From Macrostomum lignano (lineage: Eukaryota): a stretch of 64,000 nt of DNA. The translations under genes were made by a program, and so were the position numbers. The stretch lies in NCBI GenBank assembly GCA_002269645.1, contig NIVC01000600.1, forward strand, positions 186,001 through 250,000, written 5' to 3'. The notes below the pieces were generated by a model. That model worked only from the letters and a program-made list of their open reading frames with translations. It ran no database searches and was not told the DNA's origin. Shown piece by piece: positions 30,401 to 64,000 of the stretch (the stretch's first letter is position 1; each line of letters starts with the position of its first letter).

Positions 30401-33400
30401 CTGCTAAGATATACAGAGGCGGCTGAATCAGTTCGATGAAGGAGTTATAGCGGCCCCAAGACTTTCCCTTTATGTTTGAGTGAATATGCAGAGTTATTCC
30501 ATGCTGGACTCCATGTCGCGAGGTAAAGCTAGCTTGCGCTGTGAATTGTTGTCTTTTCCCACAAAACTATATTCATTTTATTATCGATTTCTCCTCACTC
30601 GCAGATACACACGGCTCAAGCAACTTTTCACACTTTTCATCGCCTAGCTGAAACCAAACCAAACCTTTTATCTTTGCTAGTGTAGAATTGCATCCATTCT
30701 GTGTTGATAAAAATACGCTGGCTACGGCCTTGCGCCCCTCTCGTTCTTTCGCACCTTTGCCTTCTAACGTATTTTGTATGCATCGATTTCTCAGCTTCCC
30801 AGCTTCTCTCCGCTTCTCTCTGATAATCCCAGCTTCCCTCCGCTTCCCTCTGAGAATCCCAGCTTCTCTCCGCCTCTTTCTAATAATCCCAGATTCTTTC
30901 CGCCTCTTTCTAATAATCCCAGCTTCTCTCCGCCTCTTTCTGATAATCCCAGCTTCTCTCCGCCTCTTTCTGATAATCCCAGCTTCTCTCCGCCTCTTTC
31001 TAATAATCCCAGCTTCTTTCCGCCTCTTTCTAATAATCCCAGCTTCTCTCCGCCTCTTTCTGATAATCCCAGCTTCTCTCCGCCTCTTTCTAATAATCCC
31101 AGCTTCTTTCCGCTTCTCTCTGATAATCCCAGCTTCTCTCCGCTTCCCTCTGATAATCCCAGCTTCTCTCCGCCTCTTTCTGATAATCCCAGCTTCCTTC
31201 CGCTGCTTTCTGATAATCCCAGTTTCTCTCCGCTTCTCTCTGATAATCCCAGCTTCTTTCCGCTTCTTTCTGATAATCCCAGCTTCTCTCCGCTTCTCTC
31301 TGATAATCCCAGCTTCTTTCCGCTTCTCTCTGATAATCCCAGCTTCTTTCCGCTTTTCTCTGATAATCCCAGCCTCTTTCCGCTTCTTTCTGATAATCCC
31401 AGCTTTTCTCCGCTTCCCTCTGATAATCCCAGCTTCTCTCCGCTTCTTTTTGATATCCCAGCTTCTCTCCGCTTCTTTTTGATATCCCAGCTTCTCTCCG
31501 CTTCTTTTTGACTGACTGACTGACTGACTGACTGAGGCGGGTGAATCTCTTAGATGAAGAGGATTTAGCGGCCCCAAGACTTTCCCTTTATGTTTGAGTG
31601 AAAAAACAGACTTAGAGCCTACTCCGTTCTAAGTATAGGAGGTCTAAGCTGCCGAGATTTACAGAGGCCGGTGAGTCAGTTAGATGAAGATTATAGCGAT
31701 TCCAAGAGCTCTGTGTGTTTGAGTGATATTGCAGAGCTAGGCCTGGCTCTTTGTTCTAAGTATAGGACAGCCAAGGCTGCTAAGATATACAGAGGCCAGT
31801 GAGTCAGTTAGATGAAGATTATAGCGATTCCAAGAGCTCTGTGTGTTTGTGTGAAATGCTGAGTTGGGTCTGGCTCTTTGTTCTAAGTATAGGACAGCCA
31901 AGGCTGCTAAGATATACAGAGGCGGCTGAATCAGTTCGATGAAGGAGTTATAGCGGCCCCAAGACTTTCCCTTTATGTTTGAGTGAAAATGCTGAGTTGG
32001 GTCTGTCTCTTTGTTCTAAGTATAGGACATCCAAGGCTGCTAAGATATACAGAGGCCAGTGAGTCAGTTAGATGAAGATTATAGCGATTCTAAGAGCTCT
32101 GTGTGTTTGAGTGAAAATGCTGAGTTGGGTCTGGCTCTTTGTTCTAAGTATAGGACAGCCAAGGCTGCTAAGATATACAGAGGCGGCTGAATCAGTTCGA
32201 TGAAGGAGTTATAGCGGCCCCAAGACTTTCCCTTTATGTTTGAGTGAAAATGCTGAGTTGGGTCTGTCTCTTTGTTCTAAGTATAGGACATCCAAGGCTG
32301 CTAAGATATACAGAGGCCAGTGAGTCAGTTAGATGAAGATTATAGCGATTCTAAGAGCTCTGTGTGTTTGAGTGAAAATGCTGAGTTGGGTCTGGCTCTT
32401 TGTTCTAAGTATAGGACAGCCAAGGCTGCTAAGATATACAGAGGCGGCTGAATCAGTTCGATGAAGGAGTTATAGCGGCCCCAAGACTTTCCCTTTATGC
32501 TTGAGCGAATATGCAGAGTTATTCCATGCTGGACTCCATGTCGCGAGGTAAAGCTAGCTTGCGCTGTGAATTGTTGTCTTTTCCCACAAAACTATATTCA
32601 TTTTATTATCGATTTCTCCTCACTCGCAGATACACACGGTTCAAGCAACTTTTCACACTTTTCATCGCCTAGCTGAAACCAAACCAAACCTTTTATCTTT
32701 GCTAGTGTAGAATTGCATCCATTCTGTGTTGATAAAAATACGCTGGCTACGGCCTTGCGCCCCTCTCGTTCTTTCGCACCTTTGCCTTCTAACGTATTTT
32801 GTATGCATCGATTTCTCAGCTTCCCAGCTTCTCTCCGCTTCTCTCTGATAATCCCAGCTTCTTTCCGCCTCTTTCTAATAATCCCAGCTTCTCTCCGCCT
32901 CTTTCTGATAATCCCAGCTTCTCTCCGCCTCTTTCTAATAATCCCAGATTCTTTCCGCCTCTTTCTAATAATCCCAGCTTCTCTCCGCTTCCCTCTGATA
33001 ATCCCAGCTTCTCTCCGCCTCTTTCTGATAATCCCAGCTTCTCTCCGCCTCTTTCTAATAATCCCAGCTTCTTTCCGCCTCTTTCTAATAATCCCAGCTT
33101 CTCTCCGCCTCTTTCTGATAATCCCAGCTTCTCTCCGCCTCTTTCTAATAATCCCAGCTTCTCTCCGCCTCTTTCTAATAATCCCAGCTTCTTTCCGCTT
33201 CTCTCTGATAATCCCAGCTTCTCTCCGCTTCCCTCTGATAATCCCAGCTTCTCTCCGCCTCTTTCTGATAATCCCAGCTTCTTTCCGCTTCTTTCTGATA
33301 ATCCCAGCTTTTCTCCGCTTCCCTCTGATAATCCCAGCTTCTCTCCGCTTCTTTTTGATATCCCAGCTTCTCTCCGCTTCTTTTTGATATCCCAGCTTCT

Positions 33401-36400
33401 CTCCGCTTCTTTTTGACTGACTGACTGACTGACTGACTGAGGCGGGTGAATCTCTTAGATGAAGAGGTTTTAGCGGCCCCAAGACTTTCCCTTTATGTTT
33501 GAGTGAAAAAACAGACTTAGAGCCTACTCCGTTCTAAGTATAGGAGGTCTAAGCTGCCGAGATTTACAGAGGCCGGTGAGTCAGTTAGATGAAGATTATA
33601 GCGATTCCAAGAGCTCTGTGTGTTTGAGTGATATTGCAGAGCTAGGCCTGGCTCTTTGTTCTAAGTATAGGACAGCCAAGGCTGCTAAGATATACAGAGG
33701 CCAGTGAGTCAGTTAGATGAAGATTATAGCGATTCCAAGAGCTCTGTGTGTTTGTGTGAAATGCTGAGTTGGGTCTGGCTCTTTGTTCTAAGTATAGGAC
33801 AGCCAAGGCTGCTAAGATATACAGAGGCGGCTGAATCAGTTCGATGAAGGAGTTATAGCGGCCCCAAGACTTTCCCTTTATGTTTGAGTGAAAATGCTGA
33901 GTTGGGTCTGTCTCTTTGTTCTAAGTATAGGACATCCAAGGCTGCTAAGATATACAGAGGCCAGTGAGTCAGTTAGATGAAGATTATAGCGATTCTAAGA
34001 GCTCTGTGTGTTTGAGTGAAAATGCTGAGTTGGGTCTGGCTCTTTGTTCTAAGTATAGGACAGCCAAGGCTGCTAAGATATACAGAGGCGGCTGAATCAG
34101 TTCGATGAAGGAGTTATAGCGGCCCCAAGACTTTCCCTTTATGCTTGAGCGAATATGCAGAGTTATTCCATGCTGGACTCCATGTCGCGAGGTAAAGCTA
34201 GCTTGCGCTGTGAATTGTTGTCTTTTCCCACAAAACTATATTCATTTTATTATCGATTTCTCCTCACTCGCAGATACACACGGTTCAAGCAACTTTTCAC
34301 ACTTTTCATCGCCTAGCTGAAACCAAACCAAACCTTTTATCTTTGCTAGTGTAGAATTGCATCCATTCTGTGTTGATAAAAATACGCTGGCTACGGCCTT
34401 GCGCCCCTCTCGTTCTTTCGCACCTTTGCCTTCTAACGTAATTTGTATGCATCGATTTCTCAGCTTCCCAGCTTCTCTCCGCTTCTCTCTGATAATCCCA
34501 GCTTCTTTCCGCCTCTTTCTAATAATCCCAGCTTCTCTCCGCCTCTTTCTGATAATCCCAGCTTCTCTCCGCCTCTTTCTGATAATCCCAGCTTCTCTCC
34601 GCCTCTTTCTGATAATCCCAGCTTCTTTCCGCCTCTTTCTAATAATCCCAGCTTCTCTCCGCCTCTTTCTGATAATCCCAGCTTCTCTCCGCCTTTTTCT
34701 AATAATCCCAGCTTTTCTCCGCCTCTTTCTAATAATCCCAGCTTCTTTCCGCCTCTTTCTAATAATCCCAGCTTCTTTCCGCTTCTCTCTGATAATCCCA
34801 GCTTCTCTCCGCTTCCCTCTGATAATCCCAGCTTCTCTCCGCCTCTTTCTGATAATCCCAGCTTCCTTCCGCTGCTTTCTGATAATCCCAGTTTCTCTCC
34901 GCTTCTCTCTGATAATCCCAGCTTCTTTCCGCTTCTTTCTGATAATCGCAGCTTCTCTCCGCTTCTCTCTGATAATCCCAGCTTCTTTCCGCTTCTCTCT
35001 GATAATCCCAGCTTCTTTCCGCTTCTCTCTGATAATCCCAGCTTCTTTCCGCTTCTTTCTGATAATCCCAGCTTTTCTCCGCTTCCCTCTGATAATCCCA
35101 GCTTCTCTCCGCTTCTTTTTGATATCCCAGCTTCTCTCCGCTTCTTTTTGATATCCCAGCTTCTCTCCGCTTCTTTTTGACTGACTGACTGACTGACTGA
35201 CTGAGGCGGGTGAATCTCTTAGATGAAGAGGATTTAGCGGCCCCAAGACTTTCCCTTTATGTTTGAGTGAAAAAACAGACTTAGAGCCTACTCCGTTCTA
35301 AGTATAGGAGGTCTAAGCTGCCGAGATTTACAGAGGCCGGTGAGTCAGTTAGATGAAGATTATAGCGATTCCAAGAGCTCTGTGTGTTTGAGTGATATTG
35401 CAGAGCTAGGCCTGGCTCTTTGTTCTAAGTATAGGACAGCCAAGGCTGCTAAGATATACAGAGGCCAGTGAGTCAGTTAGATGAAGATTATAGCGATTCC
35501 AAGAGCTCTGTGTGTTTGTGTGAAATGCTGAGTTGGGTCTGGCTCTTTGTTCTAAGTATAGGACAGCCAAGGCTGCTAAGATATACAGAGGCCAGTGAGT
35601 CAGTTAGATGAAGATTATAGCGATTCTAAGAGCTCTGTGTGTTTGAGTGAAAATGCTGAGTTGGGTCTGGCTCTTTGTTCTAAGTATAGGACAGCCAAGG
35701 CTGCTAAGATATACAGAGGCGGCTGAATCAGTTCGATGAAGGAGTTATAGCGGCCCCAAGACTTTCCCTTTATGTTTGAGTGAAAATGCTGAGTTGGGTC
35801 TGTCTCTTTGTTCTAAGTATAGGACATCCAAGGCTGCTAAGATATACAGAGGCCAGTGAGTCAGTTAGATGAAGATTATAGCGATTCTAAGAGCTCTGTG
35901 TGTTTGAGTGAAAATGCTGAGTTGGGTCTGGCTCTTTGTTCTAAGTATAGGACAGCCAAGGCTGCTAAGATATACAGAGGCGGCTGAATCAGTTCGATGA
36001 AGGAGTTATAGCGGCCCCAAGACTTTCCCTTTATGCTTGAGCGAATATGCAGAGTTATTCCATGCTGGACTCCATGTCGCGAGGTAAAGCTAGCTTGCGC
36101 TGTGAATTGTTGTCTTTTCCCACAAAACTATATTCATTTTATTATCGATTTCTCCTCACTCGCAGATACACACGGTTCAAGCAACTTTTCACACTTTTCA
36201 TCGCCTAGCTGTAACCAAACCAAACCTTTTATCTTTGCTAGTGTAGAATTGCATCCATTCTGTGTTGATAAAAATACGCTGGCTACGGCCTTGCGCCCCT
36301 CTCGTTCTTTCGCACCTTTGCCTTCTAACGTATTTTGTATGCATCGATTTCTCAGCTTCCCAGCTTCTCTCCGCTTCTCTCTGATAATCCCAGCTTCTTT

Positions 36401-38390
36401 CCGCCTCTTTCTAATAATCCCAGCTTCTCTCCGCCTCTTTCTGATAATCCCAGCTTCTCTCCGCCTCTTTCTAATAATCCCAGATTCTTTCCGCCTCTTT
36501 CTAATAATCCCAGCTTCTCTCCGCCTCTTTCTGATAATCCCAGCTTCTCTCCGCCTCTTTCTGATAATCCCAGCTTCTCTCCGCCTCTTTCTAATAATCC
36601 CAGCTTCTTTCCGCCTCTTTCTAATAATCCCAGCTTCTCTCCGCCTCTTTCTGATAATCCCAGCTTCTCTCCGCCTCTTTCTAATAATCCCAGCTTCTCT
36701 CCGCCTCTTTCTAATAATCCCAGCTTCTTTCCGCTTCTCTCTGATAATCCCAGCTTCTCTCCGCTTCCCTCTGATAATCCCAGCTTCTCTCCGCCTCTTT
36801 CTGATAATCCCAGCTTCCTTCCGCTGCTTTCTGATAATCCCAGTTTCTCTCCGCTTCTCTCTGATAATCCCAGCTTCTTTCCGCTTCTTTCTGATAATCG
36901 CAGCTTCTCTCCGCTTCTCTCTGATAATCCCAGCTTCTTTCCGCTTCCCTCTGATAATCCCAGCTTCTTTCCGCTTCTCTCTGATAATCCCAGCTTCTTT
37001 CCGCTTCTTTCTTATAATCCCAGCTTTTCTCCGCTTCCCTCTGATAATCCCAGCTTCTCTCCGCTTCTTTTTGATATCCCAGCTTCTCTCCGCTTCTTTT
37101 TGATATCCCAGCTTCTCTCCGCTTCTTTTTGACTGACTGACTGACTGACTGACTGACTGAGGCGGGTGAATCTCTTAGATGAAGAGGTTTTAGCGGCCCC
37201 AAGACTTTCCCTTTATGTTTGAGTGAAAAAACAGACTTAGAGCCTACTCCGTTCTAAGTATAGGAGGTCTAAGCTGCCGAGATTTACAGAGGCCGGTGAG
37301 TCAGTTAGATGAAGATTATAGCGATTCCAAGAGCTCTGTGTGTTTGAGTGATATTGCAGAGCTAGGCCTGGCTCTTTGTTCTAAGTATAGGACAGCCAAG
37401 GCTGCTAAGATATACAGAGGCCAGTGAGTCAGTTAGATGAAGATTATAGCGATTCCAAGAGCTCTGTGTGTTTGTGTGAAATGCTGAGTTGGGTCTGGCT
37501 CTTTGTTCTAAGTATAGGACAGCCAAGGCTGCTAAGATATACAGAGGCGGCTGAATCAGTTCGATGAAGGAGTTATAGCGGCCCCAAGACTTTCCCTTTA
37601 TGTTTGAGTGAATATGCAGAGTTATTCCATGCTGGACTCCATGTCGCGAGGTAAAGCTAGCTTGCGCTGTGAATTGTTGTCTTTTCCCACAAAACTATAT
37701 TCATTTTATTATCGATTTCTCCTCACTCGCAGATACACACGGTTCAAGCAACTTTTCACACTTTTCATCGCCTAGCTGAAACCAAACCAAACCTTTTATC
37801 TTTGCTAGTGTAGAATTGCATCCATTCTGTGTTGATAAAAATACGCTGGCTACGGCCTTGCGCCCCTCTCGTTCTTTCGCACCTTTGCCTTCTAACGTAT
37901 TTTGTATGCATCGATTTCTCAGCTTCTCAGCTTCTCTCCGCTTCTCTCTGATAATCCCAGCTTCTTTCCGCCTCTTTCTAATAATCCCAGCTTCTCTCCG
38001 CCTCTTTCTGATAATCCCAGCTTCTCTCCGCTTCCCTCTGATAATCCCAGCTTCTTTCCGCTTCTTTTTGATAATCCCAGCTTCTCTCTGCTTCTTTCTG
38101 ACTGACTGACTGACTGAGGCGGGTGAGTCTTAGATGAAGAGGTTTTAGCGGCCCTAAGACTTTCCCTTTATGTTTGAGTGAAAAAACAGACTTAGAGCCT
38201 ACTCCGTTCTAAGTATAGGAGGTCTAAGCTGCCGAGATTTACAGAGGCCGGTGAGTCAGTTAGATGAAGATTATAGCGATTCCAAGAGCTCTGTGTGTTT
38301 GAGTGAAAATGCTGAGTTGGGCCTGGCTCTTTGTTCTAAGTATAGGACAGCCAAGGCTGCTAAGATATACAGAGTCCAGTGAGGACAGCC
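18460..38390. repeat. ~20-kb hierarchical macrosatellite with 11 macro-units of about 1.4-2.4 kb
   Basis: Each unit is [127-130-bp monomers]n + ~310-bp constant segment + 30-bp minisatellite + (GACT)n. The constant segment (marked by the MHPFCVDKN ORF) recurs at 19765, 21200, 22577, 24991, 26696, 28983, 30688, 32713, 34357, ~36250 and 37816. Confidence 0.97.
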
Positions 38391-47926: not shown

Positions 47927-48331
<405 letters not shown>

Positions 48332-48859
48332 GTTATTCGCACGCTGCTTCGAAAAATTAAATTGTTCGCGTGTTGGTCCTTGCAATTATTGATAGTATTT
48401 TTCAGGCTGCAAGTATTTCATTTCGGACTTTTAAACCCAATGATTGAAAAATTTAATATCCATTAATCATATTTTTCAACAGTATGGCTATATTCCGTGT
48501 CATTCATCCTACAGAACACTAATTACATTAATTACTAACCTACACTGTCACGTGACTCGATCGATGTGTCACTTAAACCCCACTCTTAGCTTGTTGTCTA
48601 TTTAGTCCTTGACTGCTTTCCCCACACTTCTCATTACGAAAATTTACCGTTTTTAGGCTCAATCGCCGAGTTGTGCGTCGTGTTTGTTTCCTTTGTTGTC
48701 TGAGCTCGAAGGTTTAGAAATACACAAAGAAATGCTGCAGTTCGATGAGGTCCAAATCCTCGATATTTTATTGATTTTTTGTCCATAGCAAAACAAAAAA
48801 TTGACTTTTATTCAATTTACGCTTTGCCGCATTATCACCTGGGAAACGTAGCTTTGGAA

Positions 48860-49070
48860 TGGGGAACCTGTGAGGATGGGAAACGGGGGACCGGTGAGGA
48901 TGGGGAACGGGGGACCGGTGAGGATGGGGAACGGGGGACCGGTGAGGATGGGGAATGAGGGGCCAAGGAGGATTTGGATTCGGGGAACCGGTGAGGATGC
49001 GGAATGGGGAACCGGTGAGGATGGGGAACGGGAAACCGGTGAGGATGGGGAATGGGGGACCGGGGAGGAA
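48860..49070. repeat. 24-bp G-rich minisatellite (GGGGAACGGGGGACCGGTGAGGAT)
   Basis: About 8-9 degenerate units. Confidence 0.9.
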
Positions 49071-49607
49071 TTGGAATAGAAAGCAGTAAGAAAGTTAGCA
49101 CAGTGTGAGGCCGGAAGTTTAGAGCATAGAAGTCACATGCAAAATTAGGAAGAGCATATGCATGTTAAAAGTCCTTTTAGTTTTAGGTCACAAAAATTGT
49201 TGATCGAGTGTATCTTGGTATTTATTTTACTCACTAATAGGATAAGCTATGCACATGATATATAGGCCGAGTGGCACGAATATTATTAGTACAGTAACCC
49301 TACATATTAGTAGCTACTCCTAATGGATGCTCAAACGCATGGGTTAAACTAATCTCGTATTTTCTTTAGTGAGAGTGACGCAATTTAAACCACACCACAG
49401 GCCCTAAGGGCTTATATATCCTACCGATGTATACATGCAAAGGTTTCTAAATTTCTTGTGTTAATGAATTCAATGAGACAGAGTGTATCTTTTTAGTTTA
49501 TCGTACTAACGAATTTGTGGCAAGTTTTGCCAAAGGTTTTTAAAATCAATATTATAGTTAATCCTTGATTTTACGAATCAGGCTTGCGCTTCAACGCCAT
49601 TTAAATT

Positions 49608-51555: not shown

Positions 51556-51691
51556 CTGAGGAATGGGAGGAAGGAAGGTGAATTGGAGTCAGTAGAGGAG
51601 AGGTAAAGTCAACAATGGAGAAGCAGAGTCAGAGAAGCAGAAGTGGAGTCGGGAATCAAGGTGGAGAAGTGAAGTGATCTTAATTTAAGCA

Positions 51692-52240
51692 TGTTATGCC
51701 CAATGTTATTTTTTAGTCTAATGCGAACTTCAGAAGGTTTTTCTATCAGGAAAGTACAGCACATGCTTGTGCACCAGTAAAGATCCTATTGCGTGAAGCG
51801 AACACCAATGAAATGCGTTATAGAAATCATATATATACTAGCGTTCAGTGAGAATGAAGCCTCTCTCCAGTTTTTCCCGGTTCTCGGCTCTCCGCCTCTT
51901 TGCCTCCTCAACTGCTCCGCTAGCTTGCCCCAACAATCGGGCCTGAACTCTAATATCCCGATTTAACAGAGATAAATCCGGACAAACGTCAATTCGTGCA
52001 ACAATATCGATAAGTAGCCTGTGGCTCCATTTTCACTGAATTGCTTAACAAATTTGCGTAATTGCGTGATCAATATCCTATTAGGAATTGCTACTAACAT
52101 TGATTAGTAATAAACATCTTGTTGAAGGTTAGAGATCGAGAGAAACAAATCGAACCTCCGACTTATTTGATTCAACAGAAACATCAACGATCATAGTCAT
52201 CGTCAGAGGGGCACACCCCCGCAACAAAAAAATCTAAAAC
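51692..52240 (+). repeat. Candidate 5' LTR
   Basis: Starts TGTTA (51692 or 51704), TATA-like ATATATATA at ~51830, AATAAA at 52109, ends ..AACA (52226 or 52240) just before a PBS candidate. No second copy in the window to confirm it. Confidence 0.45.
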
Positions 52241-52247
52241 ATTTGAC

Positions 52248-52259
52248 TGGCTCCCCGAC
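52248..52259 (+). other. Candidate primer-binding site (tRNA-Asp)
   Basis: TGGCTCCCCGAC is complementary to a metazoan tRNA-Asp 3' end (..GUCGGGGAGCCA) as recalled; it lies a few nt after ..AAAACA. Confidence 0.55.
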
Positions 52260-54194
52260 CTTGTTTCTCTCCGTAATTTCCTTCAACATGCCCGGCTTCA
52301 ATATGCTGGGGTGAACACCTCCGTGGAGCTGGCTATGAGCTAGTGATGGCATCTTAGAAAGGGTCAGTAAAAAATATAAAAATTAAAAAATTACAAAATA
52401 TAAAAACCAATACAATTTGCAAAACTACAAAAATACTACGTGTATGATTCTCCCAAGCTGTAGAATCGTAGAAAAGATTAGTGTTATTTAATGTTCTTAA
52501 ATTTACAACCTCTAATCGCTCTCCCGCTTCGGAGAACCAGCAGCGAACCAGTCCTCAAACCGGTTCCGATGGGAATCCACCCATTCCCACTATTTACGCC
52601 CTTCTGATATACTTTCTCCGAGTACTTTGCTCGCCTCACCTCAAAGAACGTCAAGTTCACCTTGCTCTTTCTCCACAATCTCACTCTGTTCTATAAATAT
52701 CCTGCCTGGGCGACAAATCCCAACCAGGCAACCAGCATTGTCTCAATCCTTTTTCTATTTTTAGCCTCGCAAAACCAGTTCTCGTCCGGAGAATTCCGCC
52801 TTTACTCCGGCTGGTTCACAGCAGATCTGCATCGTTTTTCGTCTTCTGGAAATTCTAGTTCCATTCCGGTCTGCATCAGTTCACAAACCAGCCTCAACTG
52901 GCCTCAGTTCGCCTCACTCAGTTGGCTAAAACGCCCTATCGGCTCCGCGCCTCACTCAGTTGGCTCAACGCCCTACCACAATTCAGCTGTGATCCGCTCC
53001 AGCTCTTCTCTCCGCTGCAATTCTCATCCCCAGGGATAGAAAGTGAGGGAGAATGATTCTGTCACACCGGTGCGACACTCTCAGTACTCTCAATCTTCTC
53101 TTACCCCAGGGAATTCATTTTTGTTTCAATGGCTGCTCCCCCTCCTTGGGCTTTCCCATCAGAAACCCCCATTGTTCTCTAATGGGAATAATTTCCGTCC
53201 CAAGCTCTTATTTATACTACAATCCGCTTTCCTTCTCCGCAAAGTACAACCTACCACCCTCGTCTACCCATACACCAGCCCTTTAGCCTTCGCAGTCGTT
53301 CAAAATTTCTCAAAACAAAATAAAAATTACGCTGTGATTGCTACCCACCCTCTCCTATTCCCTATTCCTTGTTTCTCAATTTCAAGCAGCCACATCATTT
53401 CTTCATGATTAGCAGCGATAAGCCCGCGGCAATTTGTCCTATACACAGGACCTCTACACCTGCCTTCAGGTAATTATAATTCTATTTTAGTCGGCCGAAT
53501 CTATTTGTCAATTACACACTTAAACCCAGGACTGGTGCTTGGTTCATGCTCATCGTGTTCCAAGTTTGAAGTTTTGGCACGCCACTCATACGCCTCTGCC
53601 TTGCTTCCACAGACTTCTGCAGAGTCTCTTTCGTTCCTTTTACAACAAATTCAAATCGCGTACTCAACACGCATCGCCACATCCGCTGGCATCTTAACCA
53701 CAACTCACCAGCTGAGTTTTCAACGCCAATCCGTTCAATCTCAAAGGCATCAATCAACGCGCACATTGCCGCCTCCGCTGAATCTTCTACCGAAATCTGT
53801 TCAAATTCTAATCAAACTCAATCCAAGGATGAGGCTCAGCTTTTCTTGCTGCTTCTATGAAATATTTTAACCGCTCCACCGCTGAGCTATATTATAATTA
53901 GTACAGGCGCATCAGCCGACTCTACTCAGTTCTACTTTATACAACTGTTCAACACTTGCTCAAAATTGCTCTAAACTCACACTTTTGATAAATGATACTA
54001 CAGCTACCGAAGCTCTACATATTGAAAATTTGCTTATATAAAACAAAAAACTGACCCTGGATAGATGACCGCAAATCACGCTCAGATGCTATTGCTTCGC
54101 GCTATTTCAAATCTTTATTGTTACAAAATTGCGGATTATTTTCAACTCTTAATTGCAAGACCACTCGAAGTAAACCCATTCCACAGATCATTGC

Positions 54195-57100
54195 ATGAAA
54201 TTGCGTTCTGGTACCCAACTCGGACAACAACAACAACAAGAGCCGCCTGCAATATCCACACCAAATTCTGCCGGTGTCGCTGAAAATCCTATTGATATTT
54301 CTGGTGATTCTACTGGCATTTGTGGACATTCTACTGGTATTGGTGGACATTCTACTGGCATTGGAGGACACCATACTGACGACACCCAACAGCAACTAAC
54401 ACAAACAGCTACCCCAGCTACATTTTGCCATCTACCTGGCCTCCATCAAGAAAACACTGCCATCGGCACCAGAGACGAAGAACAACCTTCTGAGTTGTAC
54501 GAGCAGCAACAAGAACAACATCCTCCACAGCCACTTCTGCAACCTGATCATTTGAATCAAAATAACGCCAATATCCAGGAAACTGAGAGCAACGTTACAA
54601 TGGCAGAAGCACTAATGCAACAATTTATCAATGCTGTGCGAGATCAACAAAGACCACACGCTGCAATCCCAGCTAGTACCATCAACGAGATCCGCGAAGG
54701 TCTCAAGGAGATAGATCAACTTCATGATTTTGCCTCTTTCATCATGGAGTATGATCTATCAGCGAGAACTTTTAATCTAGATGAAAACTCAAAGCTTCGC
54801 ATCTTTCCTCGGCTCCTCAACGATCTCCTAAAGATCGAATATGCCGCTCTACCCGCCGAGACACAAAATGACTACACCCAATTAGTTCGGTCTCTGTCCG
54901 ACAGAATAGCGGTACTCACTCTCGGATCCACTTCGGCACTACATCACATCGCCAACCGCCGACAACTCCCGGGTGAGCCATTCATCCAGTACTACACGGA
55001 CATTCGCCGCAAACTTCGTGCCATATACCCAGAAGTCTCGCCACTACCACCCGTGGATGGCGAAAATGCACCGGCTAACCAAGCGGTCATTGACCAACGA
55101 AATGAAATGTTTAACAAAACATTGATCGGCCATATACTAAGTGGCGCTCTACCTCACCTTCGCGTTGAACTACTGCGAAACCCGCTGAATACCGAACAAC
55201 AGCTGCTCAACCAGGCCATTCGCCTTGAACAAATACAGCAGTCTTCACAATTAACGGCCCCAAACAACGTTCCGGCCGATATAGAAAAACGCCTTGCTGC
55301 CTTAGAATGTGGAACCATCAAGCCCAAGCCAATAGTAGCGGCTATTCAAGGCGCTAGCAATACTAGAGAACCACCAACGTGCAAATTCTGCCACAGGATT
55401 GGACACACAACAGATCGATGCTACCAGGATCCTCGAAATGCACGCCAACAAACTGCCAATGCTAGACAACCAAGACAGGCTGACTCTAAGTGGACACGCA
55501 ATCAACCGATTCAAGACCGGTACAGACGAGGCTCCGATGATCCTCGCAGCCGAGACACAGGCTCTCCAGCCAAATACTGCCACTTTCACAACTCGGACAC
55601 CCATGATACCGAAGAATGTCGTACCCTACACGATATTAAACAGGGGAGAACAACAAACAATAACCCACAGCGGTATAATCTAGGCCGGCGCGTACAATTT
55701 CAGCGCAACCCCACTCAACGATATCAACGGGAACGCCACTCTGATTCACCAAACCACGGACGTTCCAGAACACCGTCACCGCGCCCTCCTGCAGCCGGTG
55801 TAAACTCAATTCAGGTTGTCTCGAACGACCCCATGCCACAACTGCCGACTATGGACTCGCCTCAACAAATTGTGCCACCGAACAGCACACCCAGTGCTCC
55901 ACAGCGTCTCACTGAGGTTCCTGTGGCAAAATCAACGGCTACTCCAACCTATGCTTTGGACAGACCAATTGAGTACAAGTTCCATGGCTCGACCAGGCAG
56001 TTTAAGAAATTAATCCGCGACAGTCCATCTACACTGTCAGTCATCCACGTTCAACCGTACACTACGCTATCAGCCGCTCAACCAAAGCTAAGAAAAGATA
56101 TGCTACGTGCCCAGCGACAGCAGGTACACGTAAAAAGACCACTGTCTCAGCAGAAAGGACGTCGACTAACTGGTCTAACGACGCTTCTCGTGACACTCAT
56201 CTGGCTATCGCTATTCCCGACGGTGCAGACAACACCACTGCCATCGAATCCTAAGCAACATCCACTCTACGTGGACACACCAATGCTCTGTCCATTAGAT
56301 GGACCCGTGCGCATCTTCAAGATTCCTCAGCAGATCAGATGCGAACAGTTCACGTCGTCACAGGACGTTACGACACCAGTGCACTTACAGCTCTACTCTA
56401 CTAACCTGGAGCAAACCAGAACACCAGTCAGCTTATGCTTCCGTGAGGAAATCTCGGTTAATTGCCTCCCAATGAGCCAGGTTCTGCGCTCTCTCCGTGA
56501 TGCGTACGTAACCTTACGCCCACTTACAGTCGCCGCACAAGATTGCCAACATTGGACCGAATCATATAACTCACCTGATGGTCAGCTTCAACTGGTTGCC
56601 ACCACTGGAAACTACAAAATCTCTCGCTCCAATACAGGAACCTCCTTCCTCGAAGACTGTTACCATCGCAAGGCACGAACTCAAATAGTTTCAACACTCA
56701 TACAAGGGATAATAGCTTTCGCCTCTCCTAGCAAACCAATGGAATCGTTAGCCTTCTCCATGGCACACTGTAGCTATTCATCTCAAGGCTGCATTATTGA
56801 GACAACCTTTGACAACATGAAACGCTATAACCTACCGACAACTCTCCTTCAAAACGCATGGGACACTCTCGACCCACCGGCGACACAACAACTGACCGTT
56901 ACTGGCCAACGAAAACTGACACTTACGTGGAAAACAACAAGCCGTTCGGACTGTATACTCACGCCATTCCGACAAATTCGAGGTAACATACACTCGGGAT
57001 TCTTCATTAACGAAGAACAGACATTGGCTTTGACCTTTAAATTGCCGCTTCAACCCTTCCGCCTTACCTGCTCAATTGGAACGAAACGACTATATGTTTC

Positions 57101-58832
57101 CGAACAAGAACTGTACGTTGAAGTGCTCGACAACAGAGAAGAAGACTTCTTAAAGTCAATCGCGATTGTGCAATCTACAGCTGATGACACCACGAGCAAC
57201 ACAACACGCTCTGTCAAAGCCGCGGATGCTTTAACAGCTGACAGCAGCTCATCTTCTCGACAGAGCCGTTCACTACCTGACTTATTGGCTACCACAGAAC
57301 AACCGTCAACCACACCGATTCCGACGACAGTTCAAGCTCCAACTATTACGTCTCTACCCTCACAGCAGACGCTTGATACAGCTTCACCTACATCCGAGCC
57401 TACTGTCACTACCACTACAATTAAAAAATCTACTACCACACCTCTAAATCTGGAAATTACAACTCCACCAACTACGACAATAGCGACTAGTACAGTTCAA
57501 ACACCCACAACAACGATGTCGCTTAGAAAACCTCAACACACTACATCTCTTCAACTTAAGTCTACAACTCTACCAACGACAGTAGCCACAACTACAGTTA
57601 CGTCGTATAGTCCGCTAACTACGAAAACGACGACATCTACCGGTATTACCACCGAACAACTAACTCCTGGACCTATGTCTACAACACCTACTACCATACT
57701 GGAACCTGATCCTCTTAATATACCATACCTACACCGCGACCAACCACCAATGCTGGAACATCAGGACAGAATCCGTCGCGCGATTCCACCTCCAGACAAA
57801 ACAGTCAACATCACCAACGCTGAACTCAAGCTATCAGAAAACCTCGTTTCGGCACAGCTTCTCTCCAGTCAACTACAAGGACTTCAATCGAAGACTCTAC
57901 TCGATCTCAAGAAACTACACACTCAACTGACGACTACGCAGTGCAAGATGTACGCTTTGAATCTTCGCTATAGTCGCAACCTATACTATACCAATCCGAC
58001 ACTAGCTGCGCGTCAATTATTCGCTGACAAATTCATTTATGCGCACTCCATCGCTGGCTACATCTTTGTTCACCAATGTAAGCCACTAAGTCAGTTCCAG
58101 TTCGTTCAACCGCGATACTCACGAGACGAATGCTACACAAGACCACCGATACAATTTCAACTCCACAATAAGTCTGTTCTCGGATTCCTCGATACAACGA
58201 CATCGATCATCTCAACAGCAAGACCACCACTAATATCCTGCCGTTACCTACGAGACTACTATCTTCCAAAGGGTGAATTCATCTACAAAGCCACAGCCAA
58301 CTTCAGCTCCTTTAGTCCGATAGAAGCACAAAATAGATCCGACGAAACCTACCTCCTACAGTCCTTATACTCCGACATTAGACAGAGTATCTTCACGCCA
58401 CTTGGAGACGTCAACTACAGCGCTTTACGATCACCAGTAACAATAACTGACATGATGGAAAGTTTCATCCAAACACGTGATTTTCTAATCACTGTCTTTA
58501 AACTAAACAACGCTACTGGACGTCTCCACAAGGATGAATTCAAGCAGTTTGGCCTAAACGCCTTGGAAGCTTACCAGAATCTTTGGACATCTACCTTCTT
58601 CAGTTGGGAAAGATTCCAACAGAATCATATGGAGAAGTTTCTGTTCAGTTCTGCTGTAATTGTCTACGCTGCACTACTAATTTTCCTTTGCAACATTGGT
58701 CGAATCTGCGTTGCCAACACACTAACTTATGGTCGAACACACCGCCTTATGGTAATGCGAACGACCGACCCATCACCGCAACAAAACCGGAGCCCACAGC
58801 GACTTCCTACTACCCCGACCACGTGTCGTTAG
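54195..58832 (+). CDS. gag-env: Gag-Env fusion polyprotein, 1545 aa (Gag ~aa 1-540, linker, internal signal segment, gB-like glycoprotein, TM, tail)
   Basis: CKFCHRIGHTTDRC (CX2CX4HX4C) and CHFHNSDTHDTEEC knuckles. Hydrophobic LTGLTTLLVTLIWLSLFPTVQT (~56166-56230). Cys-patterned ectodomain with several N-X-S/T sequons. TM FLFSSAVIVYAALLIFLCNIG (~58638-58700). No stop between gag and env. Confidence 0.9.
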   Translation: MKLRSGTQLGQQQQQEPPAISTPNSAGVAENPIDISGDSTGICGHSTGIGGHSTGIGGHHTDDTQQQLTQTATPATFCHLPGLHQENTAIGTRDEEQPSELYEQQQEQHPPQPLLQPDHLNQNNANIQETESNVTMAEALMQQFINAVRDQQRPHAAIPASTINEIREGLKEIDQLHDFASFIMEYDLSARTFNLDENSKLRIFPRLLNDLLKIEYAALPAETQNDYTQLVRSLSDRIAVLTLGSTSALHHIANRRQLPGEPFIQYYTDIRRKLRAIYPEVSPLPPVDGENAPANQAVIDQRNEMFNKTLIGHILSGALPHLRVELLRNPLNTEQQLLNQAIRLEQIQQSSQLTAPNNVPADIEKRLAALECGTIKPKPIVAAIQGASNTREPPTCKFCHRIGHTTDRCYQDPRNARQQTANARQPRQADSKWTRNQPIQDRYRRGSDDPRSRDTGSPAKYCHFHNSDTHDTEECRTLHDIKQGRTTNNNPQRYNLGRRVQFQRNPTQRYQRERHSDSPNHGRSRTPSPRPPAAGVNSIQVVSNDPMPQLPTMDSPQQIVPPNSTPSAPQRLTEVPVAKSTATPTYALDRPIEYKFHGSTRQFKKLIRDSPSTLSVIHVQPYTTLSAAQPKLRKDMLRAQRQQVHVKRPLSQQKGRRLTGLTTLLVTLIWLSLFPTVQTTPLPSNPKQHPLYVDTPMLCPLDGPVRIFKIPQQIRCEQFTSSQDVTTPVHLQLYSTNLEQTRTPVSLCFREEISVNCLPMSQVLRSLRDAYVTLRPLTVAAQDCQHWTESYNSPDGQLQLVATTGNYKISRSNTGTSFLEDCYHRKARTQIVSTLIQGIIAFASPSKPMESLAFSMAHCSYSSQGCIIETTFDNMKRYNLPTTLLQNAWDTLDPPATQQLTVTGQRKLTLTWKTTSRSDCILTPFRQIRGNIHSGFFINEEQTLALTFKLPLQPFRLTCSIGTKRLYVSEQELYVEVLDNREEDFLKSIAIVQSTADDTTSNTTRSVKAADALTADSSSSSRQSRSLPDLLATTEQPSTTPIPTTVQAPTITSLPSQQTLDTASPTSEPTVTTTTIKKSTTTPLNLEITTPPTTTIATSTVQTPTTTMSLRKPQHTTSLQLKSTTLPTTVATTTVTSYSPLTTKTTTSTGITTEQLTPGPMSTTPTTILEPDPLNIPYLHRDQPPMLEHQDRIRRAIPPPDKTVNITNAELKLSENLVSAQLLSSQLQGLQSKTLLDLKKLHTQLTTTQCKMYALNLRYSRNLYYTNPTLAARQLFADKFIYAHSIAGYIFVHQCKPLSQFQFVQPRYSRDECYTRPPIQFQLHNKSVLGFLDTTTSIISTARPPLISCRYLRDYYLPKGEFIYKATANFSSFSPIEAQNRSDETYLLQSLYSDIRQSIFTPLGDVNYSALRSPVTITDMMESFIQTRDFLITVFKLNNATGRLHKDEFKQFGLNALEAYQNLWTSTFFSWERFQQNHMEKFLFSSAVIVYAALLIFLCNIGRICVANTLTYGRTHRLMVMRTTDPSPQQNRSPQRLPTTPTTCR

Positions 58833-60148
58833 TACCATTAGTACTTACTTCGCCCTCTAGGAGAAACACAAAGGCGACAGCCCCATCAGCTCCACCTATG
58901 GAACTCGAAGAACGACAGCCAGCTATACCGTCTACTTCTTCACGGACAGATTCAAGACTCTACCCGACACTTCAACACTGGCCGGTTGCCTACAACACCG
59001 TCTTGAAACATCTTACGATGCGAACCCTCATCACGCTCTGGTGCACAAGCCCAAGAATGACCAAATGCAAGTGCACCGCGCTGATTGATAGTGGCGCCTC
59101 TATCTCTTGCGTTTCACCTACCTTCGCACAGAAACTACAGGCTGACATTTTACCCTGTAAAATACGCGTTCAATGTGCAGGAGGACAACTTCTTAACGTA
59201 ACTAAACAGGCTAAATTTAGTATGATCATCGGATCATCAAATCGGAAAATCACAGCTTACATATTGGAGGCTATGCCACCCGATTATGATCTAATTCTCG
59301 GTGTCGAAACCTTTAAATCCCTTGGCATACCACTGTCCATTGACTACGCCAAGTCAGAAGCACAAATCGATGGCACTTCGTTTCCCATATTGAATACTTA
59401 CACAGCAACTGAGGTCGCTGAAGTCTACTTGCCAAAGCAGACTCACATACCCGCTCAATCTACCACCTGGATACAGGCGAATATCGACACGACCTATCCA
59501 AAGCGCCAGCCTGTCCTATTCATACCAAAGGATCATACTATTCAACGCTATAAGCTCTTAATCGCAAGCTGCTTGACGCTTACAGATGAAACGGGTAATT
59601 CGATCCTCATACAGATCGCTAACCCTTCACTACAGCCAGTAACACTCTATGCTCAAACACGATTAGGCAGTCTGTCCGATCCCGCGGAATATACACCTGT
59701 TACTTCAAAACCTACAGCAACAGTCAATACCATCTCTACCTCGCACGCACGACCTGAGACCGACCGCCAGCTAATTGAACAACAAACACGGCCTAACAAT
59801 TCGCATCTGACACCCGAACAAGCTACGAGACTGTGCGACCTACTTTTAGAGTACCGAGATACGCTGGCTCTGTTACCTACGGATATGGGATGCACTACTC
59901 AATATACCGCCACAATTAACGTTCAACCACATACGCATCCAATTACATCGCGACCTTTTCCGATTGCACATGGTCTTCAAGAGCGTTTTGACCAACTGAT
60001 CGAGAATTTCATCCACAAAGGAATACTCAGCCCTAGCGAGTCGGAATACTCAAGCCCATGTCTACTGGTCGAAAAGAAGACACTTGATGAACAAGGACGC
60101 CGCCAATTGCGTCTTGTCGTTGACTTTCGCCGTCTCAACGAATTCTAA
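58583..60148 (+). CDS. pol: Pol part 1: aspartic protease and RT N-terminus, in the -1 frame relative to gag-env; true start unknown
   Basis: ALIDSGAS protease motif; RT start PITSRPFPI..KGILSPSESEYSSPCLLVEKK..RLVVDFRRLNE. The 58583 start is a TTG, not credible as an initiator. Confidence 0.92.
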   Translation: MDIYLLQLGKIPTESYGEVSVQFCCNCLRCTTNFPLQHWSNLRCQHTNLWSNTPPYGNANDRPITATKPEPTATSYYPDHVSLVPLVLTSPSRRNTKATAPSAPPMELEERQPAIPSTSSRTDSRLYPTLQHWPVAYNTVLKHLTMRTLITLWCTSPRMTKCKCTALIDSGASISCVSPTFAQKLQADILPCKIRVQCAGGQLLNVTKQAKFSMIIGSSNRKITAYILEAMPPDYDLILGVETFKSLGIPLSIDYAKSEAQIDGTSFPILNTYTATEVAEVYLPKQTHIPAQSTTWIQANIDTTYPKRQPVLFIPKDHTIQRYKLLIASCLTLTDETGNSILIQIANPSLQPVTLYAQTRLGSLSDPAEYTPVTSKPTATVNTISTSHARPETDRQLIEQQTRPNNSHLTPEQATRLCDLLLEYRDTLALLPTDMGCTTQYTATINVQPHTHPITSRPFPIAHGLQERFDQLIENFIHKGILSPSESEYSSPCLLVEKKTLDEQGRRQLRLVVDFRRLNEF

Positions 60149-62751
60149 CAACACCAAGCATACGCCCGCCACGTATACCGGACCTCCTACTACGCCTACG
60201 CGACGCCAAACTTTATTCGTTGTGCGACCTTGCCGACGCGTTTTACCAAGTCCGACTAGACCCAGACAGCGCCAAATATACCGCCTTCATCGCACCTAAT
60301 GGCCTCCTTTTTCAGTTTAATCGCTTGCCACAGGGTCTGGCCGCATCTCCCAGCCTGATGTGTCGTCTAGTCGCTCTACTCACAGCAGATTCACCTAATC
60401 TTATCGCCTACCTGGACGATGTACTCCTAATCGCAAAGGACTTTAATGGCATGCTGGGTGAACTCAGACATTTCTTGGCGAAACTCCGCCATCACGGTCT
60501 TCGTATCTCGCTTAGAAAATGCACCTTTGCAAAGAACGAAGTACAGTATCTAGGCTTTCAAGTGTCCGAACATGGAATCCGACCGGCACCAGCGCTTGTC
60601 GAAAAAATTAAGAACTTCCCGGAACCTAAGACACCTAAGCAACTGCAGTCCTTCCTCGGACTTGCCAACTTTTATCGCTCGCATGTACAAGGATACTCTA
60701 CGATTGTGACACCATTGCTTCGTGCTCTCAAAGACGCTCTGGCTACAAAAAGTTTGAAATGGACTACTATCACACAGACGGCCTTTGACAACATCCGAAA
60801 GATTCTGTCAACTGATATTATACTAGTACATCCTGATCCTCGAAAGCCCTACGTGCTTCATACGGATGCCTCTGACTACTCTCTTGGTGCAGTCCTCTCT
60901 CAACACGATTCGCGTGGACATCTGCAACCCGTCGCTTACATCTCTAAAACTTTGACTCCGACGGAACAACGTTATCCTGCCATTGAGAGAGAAGCCTATG
61001 CTATCTATTGGGCGATTCGGAAGCTCCATGTTTTCCTATACGCCTCACACCTACCATTTACAGTGTTCACGGATCACCAACCGTTGCAATCTCTGTTCAC
61101 TGACAAACAGCCTCTCTCGAAACGACTGCAAAAGTGGATTCTACATCTACAGGATTACCAATTTTCGATCCACTATATTAAAGGCCGCTCAAACGCTGTA
61201 GCCGACTGCCTGTCCCGTATTCCTAGTGTGAATACTTTACATCCCATCCCAGCCTTTGACAACTTGCACGAAGCAGTAAACCAAGACCCATTCTGTGCGA
61301 CAGTGATAGCCACTCTACAGAACCAAAAAGACGACGTACTAACATCCATGTACAAGAACTTATCGAAAACAGAACAAAAACATCTGACGAAACATCTACA
61401 CCACTTCTACTACACCAACGACACACTCTACTACGATCCATTGGAAGGTGACTCTCGTAGTCCTAACTCGTCGACACCACGTCTGGTGATCCCAACCGCC
61501 TACAGAGACGCTCTCCTTCAGGAATGCCATTCCTCTCCATTTGGAGGACACCTTGGTCTTCAGAAAACCTTGTCCCGACTCAGCAAATTCTACTATTGGC
61601 CCAATTGCCACGCAGACGTGACAAGCTTCGTTAACAAATGCGAGATTTGTCAAAAAGCCAAATCAGGACCTCGACTGCGTTCAGAACAGAAAGCAATGAA
61701 ATTCCGCAGTGTCTTCTCACACCTGGCTATTGATCTTGTAGGACCGTTACCACCGGCTCATTACATGCGAGATGTGTACAAGTACATCTTGACAGCTCAG
61801 TGTGGTGTTAGCAAGTTTCTGTTCACGATACCACTGGCTGATACAACCACGTCTACTATTTGCAACCATTTGTTTCGACATGTCTTCGCGATAGCCGGAC
61901 TTCCGGCCTGTCTGATTTCTGATAATGGACCACAGTTCATTTCCAAGGAGTTCCGCGAGTACATGGACACAATGGGAATCCGACTGATCTACACATCAGT
62001 CTATCAACCATCCAGCAATTTCGTAGAACGTGCCCACCGAAACCTCAAACAGACACTAACTACCTTTGTGCACGACAAGCCCGATCACTGGATCGAATAT
62101 TTGCCAGCAGTGACTCTTGCGTTGAACACCGCAGCCCACACTGCCATGAAGGAATCGCCATTCTACCTGTTCTACGCCCGTGACTTCCTGGCACCCAGCA
62201 CAAGAATCCTCGAAAATCAAATATCGATCTACACCGAGGAAATCCAACCAATCAGCTTGACCTGCTCAGCGATCACATTGGCCAGAGAAATTGCTCTCCA
62301 TCACCTACACTCTACAGCCGATCAACGGGCCCAGAAACAGAACGAAGAAAAAGCCCCTAATGCTCAAAAGCTCACCATAGGCTCCCGCTGTTACTTAGAC
62401 ATATCTGCTACTAAGCTGACAAAGTTCTCTAATCCGTTCCGAGGACCGATGCGAATTCTAAAATGGCTGAGCCCACAGAATGCGCTAATCCAGGATATTA
62501 ATAAGCTGACAGAGCCACCATTCGTAGTCCATGCCTCCAAGCTAAAACGTTCCCCTTTTCAACCACAAGAGGAACTCAATCTGCCGAACTTCACATCATC
62601 GATACCACAGACTCACTTCGACCACCACCCGCCACTGGCACAGCATCACGCTACTCAGACTGACGTCGTGGATGAGCCTGACACTCGTGATCAGCACGGA
62701 CTAGAACCTATTCCAGCTGTGCGATATCATCTGCGCTCACGGGATGTGTGA
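60146..62751 (+). CDS. pol: Pol part 2: RT-RNase H-integrase, continuing after a 1-nt frameshift at ~60145
   Basis: The frame reopens as LTTPSIRPPRIPDLLLRLRDAKLYSLCDLADAFYQV. Motifs LPQGL and YLDD (RT); LHTDASDYSLGAVLSQ, EREAYAI and TDHQPL (RH); H..H..CEIC, IDLVGPLP, SDNGPQF and VERAHR (IN); GPMRI (GPY/F-like). Confidence 0.95.
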
Positions 62752-64000
62752 ATCAATACGCGGCAGTTGATTATCGATGGACAGTTGATTATCGATACGT
62801 TTTGAAAATTATTTTTGTTTATATTATTTCTATTAGTTTTATAATTATATATTATATCTTTCTTCCTCTTAAATCGCAATTTATCATTTTCCGCTTCAAC
62901 TTATATATCTTCGTTAGATAATTTCCTTGACAATACGCTACTCTTTTGCTACTCACAGTAGAAATGTCAGTTCTCAACACTCTTATCAAAATTATTGTTT
63001 TATTCTGTTGTCGTCAAACGCTTTAGCCCTACATTTTATTTGCTTACCTTTAATTACTATCACTCACCCTTGAAAAAATTTATCAGAACCATCTTCTCTA
63101 CTCTTGCTCACCCACGTGAACTCAATGATCTTTTCTTTCGTCACCTCATAATCCCTATTCGGTCTTTTGTAAGACCACGCGTTACCCGGATCTACACAGC
63201 CGTCCCGCTCTACACTGCAATCCGGCTCTACACGCTGCCCTGACCGAAATTCAGCTTCGACTCTGTTCAACACCAACCCGGCCCACTGCCCAGCCCTATC
63301 TACTACTTGGAAACAACCTGCTATGCTCCGAATTAACAGACTACATGCCTGCTACCGACAACTACGGCTAACTACGAACTACGACACCGGCCTGACTACA
63401 GAAACCCTACTGGCTGCAACAAAACTAAGACGAACAGCACTATCTGACACGTGGTGGCCTTGAAAAAGGCCGTTTTGACGTTGGCGCCCAAAGGACGCAG
63501 AAGACTTGGCAGACCAACTGTGCAGTTACACCGCAGTCTCCTGGACACGGGCAGTTGCAGCGGGCCGCAATGGTGCGCGACAACAGCGGCTGCAGCCGCC
63601 AAAGCAGCAGCAACACTTGCAGCAACAACAGCAGGCTACAAACGCCGCCACTAGCAGTAACAGCAGCAGCAGCATGATGGCGACGACCGCGCTGATGGAA
63701 ATGAAATACGCGTGACGCCCCTGGAGAATACCAGCCGCGATCTCTGTAATTTGCTCTCTTCCCAAAGACAGACCAGCCATTGACTAATCTAACTTGAATG
63801 ATAAACGAGCTATATCGAAACTTAAAAACAATTGCGGACAAAACCTGAACTAGAAAATTCCCTCCCTATCGTTTTTTATCTTATTTATACCACGCGACTC
63901 CATCCTTTCCTTTGAATTAGCTTCAGTGTACACTCACGCGCTCTACGAACACCCACCCCAAGCCAATAATCTCTTCGACCCCACGTACAATGTACATTCT

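Follow-up and report, generated by a model that had tools for sequence, protein, structure and literature searches.

Among invertebrates, the counterparts of retroviruses are Ty3/gypsy elements that carry env, and those with the gene order gag-env-pol show that a retrotransposon can take up the fusogen of a negative-strand RNA virus. GAG-ENV-POL Ty3/gypsy 'errantiviruses' with an Env of the gB type known from herpes simplex virus (HSV) have been described from Platyhelminthes, Nematoda and Bryozoa (Chary & Hayashi, eLife 2026; PMC13524379). The published Env is built of five domains with conserved cysteine bridges, and its furin site is 'not always conserved'; the ectodomain lies between a signal peptide and a transmembrane helix, or else between two transmembrane helices (PMC13524379). 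The same paper cites Sacco et al. 2022 (J Gen Virol) on nematode elements that arose when an RNA-virus glycoprotein was captured. Here we analyzed an element from the flatworm Macrostomum lignano (Platyhelminthes) that lies in a 64,000-nucleotide stretch of contig NIVC01000600.1 (positions 186,001 to 250,000, forward strand); we call this whole stretch the window and give all coordinates within it. The nematode elements reportedly have a continuous gag-env-pro-pol open reading frame (ORF) and an Env resembling the G proteins of nyamiviruses and chuviruses. As far as their architecture is reported it is like that of the window element, the host being Nematoda in one case and Platyhelminthes in the other, and we know of no report of a mucin-like insert in the nematode elements.

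An earlier interpretation made from the DNA letters alone (the sequence-only reading) had proposed a gB-type fusogen with a doubly furin-flanked, mucin-like insert at positions 56166-58700 of the window. It had also noted that gB-like or chuvirus-G-like Envs occur in some invertebrate retroelements, which is correct and applies to the element described here. Contrary to what had been assumed, Env is not a gene of its own. The range 56166-58700 belongs to a larger ORF of 1545 aa (54195-58832, + strand) that starts with gag at 54195 and continues into env, and in a sister copy, L001, gag, env and pol are one continuous ORF of 2852 codons flanked by 577-bp long terminal repeats (LTRs); env is thus the middle of a gag-env-pol polyprotein gene. 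We consider it probable that the region is the class III Env module of a Ty3/gypsy gag-env-pol element with a Thr-rich insertion at a basic site, RIRR, where it would form a cleaved, O-glycosylated appendage.

The class III assignment is carried by profile comparisons and by predicted structure. We aligned 22 family members, which are 16-26% identical to the window env (alignment A1; A2 and A3 are the profiles of its N-terminal and C-terminal halves). Searched against PDB sequences, A1 gave 38 distinct matches above noise, and all are herpesvirus gB; the best is gB of Epstein-Barr virus (EBV; E = 3.9e-20). The match to EBV gB falls in two stretches, EBV residues 28-126 and 343-649, and the blocks aligned by HMMER are an N-terminal C-x17-C and, in the C-terminal part, a helix with Cys, NPT..R, PC, C-Y/T-..P-I, G-F/Y-LD and a final C. 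The parallels with gB that the sequence-only reading had drawn turn out to be these same blocks. The starts of MLCPLDG and SQLQGLQ are at ORF aa 697 (56283) and aa 1225 (57867), respectively. The two halves also match gB separately in PDB (A2, E = 7e-4; A3, E = 6.3e-13), and every Cys, Gly and Arg that is invariant in the family is kept in the window env.

The AlphaFold2 model of the env has predicted local distance difference test (pLDDT) values of 80-90 in its folded parts and of 80-92 for env residues 545-700. The 50 best Foldseek matches of the full model in PDB are all gB (E down to 7e-15, probability 1.00), and a model of the N-terminal half alone (pLDDT 77.6) matches only gB, with a superposition on gB that is no better. 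The combination of AlphaFold and Foldseek had been suggested as a check by the sequence-only reading, and it returned gB from PDB and viral G proteins from BFVD, although the template-modelling (TM) scores to gB are only 0.18-0.39 for the full model and 0.26-0.36 for the N-terminal half, where the query-normalised values are 0.23-0.36. The structural alignments to gB have an identity of only 8-13%. Because the TM-scores are low, the fold assignment rests on Foldseek local scores together with profile homology, and not on rigid-body superposition.

Hydropathy analysis of the 1545-aa ORF (19-aa windows) reveals exactly two hydrophobic segments, at aa 658-676 and 1479-1497/1506. The env range is therefore an ectodomain with an anchor on its N-terminal side and a transmembrane helix on its C-terminal side, and 14 Cys and seven N-glycosylation sequons lie in between. 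The first segment (56166..56222, +) is an internal hydrophobic signal or anchor, and the relatives have a hydrophobic segment at the equivalent place, ahead of the conserved P-M-x-C start. The N-terminal folded half (aa 695-1000, 56277..57194, +) is beta-rich with 10 Cys; judged from the AlphaFold2 model, Foldseek, profile A2 and the invariant Cys, it corresponds to the N-terminal strand of gB plus domains I-II. It is followed by a disordered linker (aa 1001-1216, 57195..57842, +), with pLDDT of ~30 over env residues 326-541. The C-terminal folded half (aa 1217-1478, 57843..58628, +), delimited by the model, profile A3 and BLASTP, comprises a beta-rich domain with four conserved Cys and membrane-proximal helices, and contains six N-glycosylation sequons. 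Near its start the single-chain model predicts a central helix of 47 residues (env 545-591, 57852-57992, +), directly after the putative cleavage site and a candidate for the trimeric-core helix of class III proteins. The transmembrane helix (aa 1482-1506, 58638..58712, +) is hydrophobic in the aligned relatives as well and helical in the model. The cytoplasmic tail (58713..58829, +) is in frame with the protease in L001, in P0051 and P0052 and in distant relatives. The arrangement of signal, C-terminal transmembrane helix and cytoplasmic tail is that of a type I membrane protein, with the first hydrophobic segment internal to the polyprotein. A second, smaller insertion of ~40 aa (~56844-56970, env residues ~209-250) is found in the N-terminal half; it is partly helical with low confidence, and among the 21 aligned relatives only P0004 has it in common with the window.

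The 'gB-type' label holds as far as homology is concerned; the nearest viral relatives of the window env are elsewhere. Against BFVD, the top Foldseek matches are nyami-, chu- and rhabdo-like G proteins, all stronger than any gB match, and the first is the glycoprotein of Nyavirus midwayense (E = 2.4e-21). Consistent with this, 14 of the 22 family members match the Pfam family Monjiviricetes_fusion (PF24664; best 3.2e-14), although the window env alone has no match to it at E<=1. HMMER, run exhaustively with the env part against 1.84 billion representative proteins, returned 50 matches, many of them gag-env(-pol) fusions, and G of San Jacinto virus (Nyavirus) is among the 50. BLASTP of San Jacinto virus G against the window env covers both halves, with E values of 5e-15 (C-terminal half) and 8e-10. 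Word-indexed protein searches gave no match with the C-terminal half of env and only two short fragments with profile A3. For the Pfam gB family (PF00606), the window env scores 13 bits (E = 0.071), below the cut-off of 43, and four of the 22 relatives match at E<=1; by these scores the window env is a relative of gB that lies outside the gB family proper. Thus, we conclude that the closest exogenous relatives are the nyamivirus and chuvirus-type G proteins and that herpesvirus gB is more distant. Four uncharacterised entomopoxvirus proteins (W6JPK9, Q9YVZ3, A0A916KPE9 and Q9YW15) are also among the best BFVD matches (E = 1e-17 to 3e-11); a class III glycoprotein of this kind seems to be present in large DNA viruses of insects too.

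The insert lies in the linker between the two folded halves. RIRR (aa 1192-1195, 57768..57779, +) falls in a column of A1 that is conserved across the family as R-x-K/R-R, immediately before the long central helix, and a canonical furin-type motif is present in at least 20 of the 30 family linkers. EBV gB has its basic cleavage site in the same column of the profile alignment. The sequence-only reading had placed the Thr/Ser/Pro-rich stretch where gB has its furin-cleaved linker, and both the predicted disorder and this alignment bear it out. The positions that it gave for the stretch and for the two basic motifs are also exact. The second motif, RQSR (aa 1022-1025, 57258..57269, +), is a minimal R-x-x-R at the N-terminal edge of the insert. 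It departs from the furin consensus and occupies columns of A1 that are specific to the window, where no relative has aligned residues. Of the two proposed furin flanks, therefore, RIRR stands as a conserved family site and RQSR does not.

Between these motifs are 166 aa (57270..57767, +) with 53 Thr (32%), 23 Pro (14%) and 15 Ser (9%), together 55% Ser, Thr and Pro (S/T/P), compared with ~12-38% per 40-aa window elsewhere in the ORF. This is a strong compositional anomaly and not a matter of chance. We measured the linker in 30 family members, from the last conserved block of the N-terminal half to the start of the helix. It is 239 aa long in the window, versus a median of 31 aa and a maximum of 151 aa in the 29 relatives, and its S/T/P content is 48% versus 6-35%. 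None of the 29 relatives with a scorable linker has a Thr-rich insert, and most of aa 1001-1216 is without counterpart in the 21 relatives aligned in A1. The window linker is thus the longest and the only Thr-rich one among ~30 family members, and the insert ends exactly at the conserved putative cleavage site. Tandem repeats, as in true mucins, are absent, while the high S/T/P content and the disorder are present. We conclude that the insert is a real, lineage-specific, mucin-like insertion.

No tandem repeat was detected in the insert DNA at a score >=30, and a microsatellite origin was rejected on this ground. A second, diverged gag-env-pol relative from M. lignano, P0005 (UniRef A0A1I8HYC8), has its ectodomain almost wholly replaced (aa ~1190-1440) by ~100 aa of Asn/Asp/Thr-rich repeats with many N-glycosylation sequons; it keeps the signal anchor, the first ectodomain residues, the membrane-proximal region, the transmembrane helix and the tail.

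Several observations weigh against the interpretation of the region as a class III Env with a cleaved, glycosylated appendage. Taken alone, the window protein has no significant match in Pfam (1545-aa ORF) or among PDB sequences (phmmer, env), its env is only 16-26% identical to the relatives, and the TM-scores to gB are low. Where the relatives have aromatic, putative fusion loops (Y-F-F-G and W/Y/C-C-x-W types), the aligned segments of the window read L-P-M-S-Q-V-L and S-F-L-E-D-C-Y; these putative fusion-loop segments (~aa 758-769 and 812-827) have lower pLDDT and are less hydrophobic than in the relatives, and fusogenic competence is therefore uncertain. The window copy carries two frameshifts in the polyprotein gene. 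Finally, the M. lignano copies are all nearly identical, and selection on the insert is therefore not measurable.

Among the alternatives, the one that survives best takes the insert as a neutral low-complexity expansion, tolerated in a disordered loop and without a function of its own. No part of the family proteins varies more in length than the linker (14-239 aa), which the model shows as disordered; gB proteins also tolerate a disordered linker there, and the replacement of the P0005 ectodomain by repeats in the same species indicates that low-complexity lumenal sequence arises readily in the M. lignano lineage. On the other hand, the insert is open over its 166 codons only in the coding frame, while the other five frames have 5-28 stops. 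It does not resemble a recent microsatellite either, as it has no tandem repeat and no repeated pentapeptide and uses all four Thr codons. The insert is also kept identical or nearly so in all recently amplified M. lignano copies, a weak argument given how similar these are throughout. Weighing both sides, we regard neutral expansion as possible but doubtful.

A different fate for the insert would be removal. It could be a pro-peptide-like module that covers the fusogen in transport and is released by cuts at RQSR and RIRR, two basic motifs that bracket it exactly. RQSR, however, is without the basic residue at P2 that the furin consensus calls for, and no residue of any relative aligns to it. 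When the window linker was shuffled, an extra R-x-x-R appeared anywhere in 12% of cases and as far from RIRR as RQSR in 3.5%, and the occurrence of RQSR is compatible with chance. Taken alone, RQSR would be weak evidence for a second cut. Across the family, in four of the six longest linkers (window, P0049, P0042 and P0038) a second R-x-x-R is separated from the canonical site by >=60% of the linker length, with conditional shuffle probabilities of such a far motif of 0.035, 0.12, 0.05 and 0.23, respectively, a combination that is improbable by chance. P0049 has canonical motifs at both linker ends, RRKR and RIRR. This test was post hoc with n=6, and the linker bounds and the 60% threshold were set after the data were seen; paired motifs in four of the six longest linkers therefore give weak, post hoc support for excision. 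Moreover, the other long inserts are not Thr-rich (S/T/P 17-27%), and the pairing of motifs is all that they have in common with the window. Judged on the motifs, excision would be a live but minority hypothesis, and we consider it unlikely for the window insert. Rather less likely still is the general form of this proposal, in which the long linker inserts of the family would be convertase-bracketed modules excised on maturation, and the ~170-aa segment of M. lignano an O-glycosylated mask removed in a two-cut, pep27-like activation.

The linkers of P0049, P0042 and P0038, which are metagenome-derived, are 151, 89 and 60 aa long, with basic motifs at both ends and without Thr enrichment. The 120-aa insert of P0049 between RRKR and RIRR looks ordinary and is possibly folded.

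It is also improbable that the Env is no longer a fusogen, either as the decaying relic of an element that spreads intracellularly or as a gene co-opted by the host. Such a view would account for the putative fusion-loop segments, which are less aromatic than those of the relatives, and for the two frameshifts of the window copy, and P0005 is an example of ectodomain loss in the same genome. However, the env part of the window is free of stops and substitutions relative to L001, from which it differs by one single-base indel only, and several M. lignano copies retain the full ORF of 2852-2859 codons. The family-invariant Cys, Gly and Arg residues are all present, and the module belongs to an LTR element, which sets it apart from a solitary host gene. 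The last alternative, a host mucin or cell-surface protein gene, which the sequence-only reading had named as the outcome that would overturn it, has only the Thr/Ser/Pro-rich composition of the 166 aa and the swamping of whole-region word searches by low-complexity candidates in its favor, and it is rejected with near certainty, as no such protein is among the significant sequence or structure matches (the PDB matches are all gB and the top BFVD matches all viral glycoproteins) and the region has gag and pol on its two sides in the same reading frame, within LTRs.

We return to the interpretation as a class III Env with a cleaved, O-glycosylated appendage, for which we propose the following mechanism. 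The polyprotein would be threaded twice through the membrane of the endoplasmic reticulum (ER), with Gag in the cytosol, the ectodomain in the lumen, and the tail and Pol again in the cytosol; two membrane spans would in this way keep both Gag and Pol cytosolic in a single Gag-Env-Pol polyprotein. The internal hydrophobic segment would direct the ectodomain to the ER lumen, after which signal peptidase probably removes the segment, and the protease of the element would release Pol and the tail. A furin-type convertase may then cut at RIRR, ahead of the central helix, as in cleaved gB, and the Thr-rich segment would be O-glycosylated in the Golgi. After the cut, the segment would remain at the C-terminal end of the N-terminal fragment, where it may serve as a flexible, glycan-rich cover or modulator of the fusogen, or in attachment; if RQSR were also cut, it would be released instead. 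The more plausible roles would be steric control of the fusogen, a protective function in mucus or sea water, and attachment via lectins. A shield of the antibody-evading type makes little sense, as it has no obvious target in a flatworm.

The remainder of the element supports its placement among Ty3/gypsy elements. The polyprotein gene extends over 54195..62751 (+) and is broken in the window copy. Its gag part (ORF aa 1-654, 54195..56156, +) has a CCHC zinc knuckle (aa 396-409, 55380-55421, +) and a CHHC variant (aa 462-475, 55578-55619, +); it has no Pfam match and is similar to the gag of the relatives P0005 and P0008. The pol part (58833..62751, +) is of Ty3/gypsy type and encodes aspartic protease, reverse transcriptase, RNase H and integrase in this order, based on Pfam matches to Asp_protease_2, RVT_1, RT_RNaseH (5e-37), Integrase_H2C2 (7.5e-21) and rve. 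The env tail of the distant relatives P0003, P0012 and P0013 also continues in frame to D-S/T-G-S protease motifs, which indicates that a single polyprotein is the design of the group. A programmed -1 frameshift between gag-env and pol was considered and rejected, as there is no in-register slippery heptamer and the ORF of L001 is continuous.

L001 and the window (51670-63999) have a nucleotide identity of 99.72%. Two single-base frameshifts distinguish the polyprotein gene of the window copy from that of L001, the first separating gag-env from pol and the second within pol; the window gene has no further in-frame stops. The top HMMER match of the env part is a 2852-aa M. lignano protein that is 99.5-99.9% identical to the window copy over three frames. 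The annotated copies in M. lignano comprise at least six gene models, all 'hypothetical proteins', one of them encoded on the contig L001, and an exact-sequence look-up of the window ORF gave no match, the window copy differing from the annotated ones.

The 5' LTR (~577 bp, 51670..52246, +) was located by alignment to L001 and matches the 3' LTR of L001 (L001 13473-14049) at 98.6%. We found no LTR pair within the window because the 3' LTR is located past its end, as shown by L001. The 5' LTR is directly followed by a TGG-initiated sequence that, on inspection, resembles a primer-binding site (+), and by an untranslated leader of ~1.95 kb (52247..54194, +) with many stops in its frame translations and one mismatch and two indels relative to L001. 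The non-coding ends are unusually long, with this ~1.95 kb ahead of the ATG of gag and 1.25 kb or more past the pol stop (62752-64000); in L001, ~1.7 kb separate the pol stop from the 3' LTR. The 3' non-coding part is the least conserved and accounts for 15 of the 28 mismatches between the window and L001.

The element lies at the edge of a repeat-rich block. Positions 1-51669 of the window are almost all satellite DNA, notably 18461-38101. A 30-bp unit forms arrays of ~20-26 copies each, which alternate regularly with arrays built of 128/261/388-bp units, in a higher-order repeat of ~1.4-2 kb that recurs a dozen times. Many other arrays, with units of 11, 15, 17, 21, 22, 24, 33, 44 and 48 bp, occupy 2-17 kb and 38-49 kb. 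A few kb upstream of the 5' LTR (47927-48333 and 48856-49077) there is a (TCTG)n microsatellite with ~100 copies, after which come G-rich repeats of 24 bp. One of the relatives, P0008 (MEE4246962.1), is a gag-env fusion on a 9-kb contig deposited under a 'Kangiellaceae bacterium' metagenome-assembled genome; it is most likely animal DNA that was binned into a bacterial genome.

Compared with known systems, the element is closest to those of Chary & Hayashi, with which it has in common a Ty3/gypsy pol, env between gag and pol, a gB-type Env, multiple near-identical copies and a flatworm host. These authors treat gag, env and pol as ORFs, whereas the intact M. lignano copy is one continuous ORF (PMC13524379). 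The words 'mucin' and 'disordered' do not occur in the main text of that paper, and the paper on LTR elements and heat stress in M. lignano does not mention env or glycoproteins. The M. lignano element is a clean example of the group from a species used as a laboratory model, and several of its near-identical copies retain the full ORF.

Among exogenous viruses, the G proteins of Nyamiviridae and Chuviridae share with the window env the P-M-x-C start and the Cys pattern, as well as the basic site and the blocks NPT..R, PC and G-Y-LD, but they are encoded by free-standing genes of negative-strand RNA viruses, whereas the window env is embedded in a retroelement polyprotein. The linker of San Jacinto virus G is ~120 aa long and, unlike that of the window, not Thr-rich. 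EBV gB (PDB 3fvc) shares the class III fold, the domain order and a basic site in a disordered linker ahead of the central helix. It has a Ser/Pro/Thr-rich stretch immediately upstream of the basic site as well, but this is a few dozen residues long and the window insert is several times longer. Herpesvirus gB acts together with gH/gL in a DNA virus; the window element, in contrast, encodes no partners of the gH/gL type.

Segments comparable to the insert are known from other fusogens. The mucin-like domain of Ebola GP1 stays on the N-terminal subunit beside a furin-type site, while pep27 of respiratory syncytial virus (RSV) F and the mucin-like domain of Crimean-Congo haemorrhagic fever virus (CCHFV) are released by cleavage at both ends. 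Like the window insert as proposed here, each is a disordered, heavily glycosylated segment directly beside a furin-type site. These are class I or II proteins of vertebrate viruses in which glycosylation and cleavage have been shown experimentally, whereas in the window both are inferred, and the comparison implies no homology. Context for CCHFV and NSDV (Nairobi sheep disease virus) can be found in PMC12282141. If the window linker is glycosylated or excised, it would represent a convergent mucin-like cover on a class III fusogen in an animal without antibodies, which would point to roles of such covers beyond immune evasion; if excision by two cuts is true, it would be a pep27-like activation device of a kind so far undescribed for class III fusogens. 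If it is neither glycosylated nor excised, the element would be an ordinary member of the published family. Thus, we conclude that the element is the flatworm counterpart of an already published kind, and that the mucin-like insert is the part that sets it apart as unusual.

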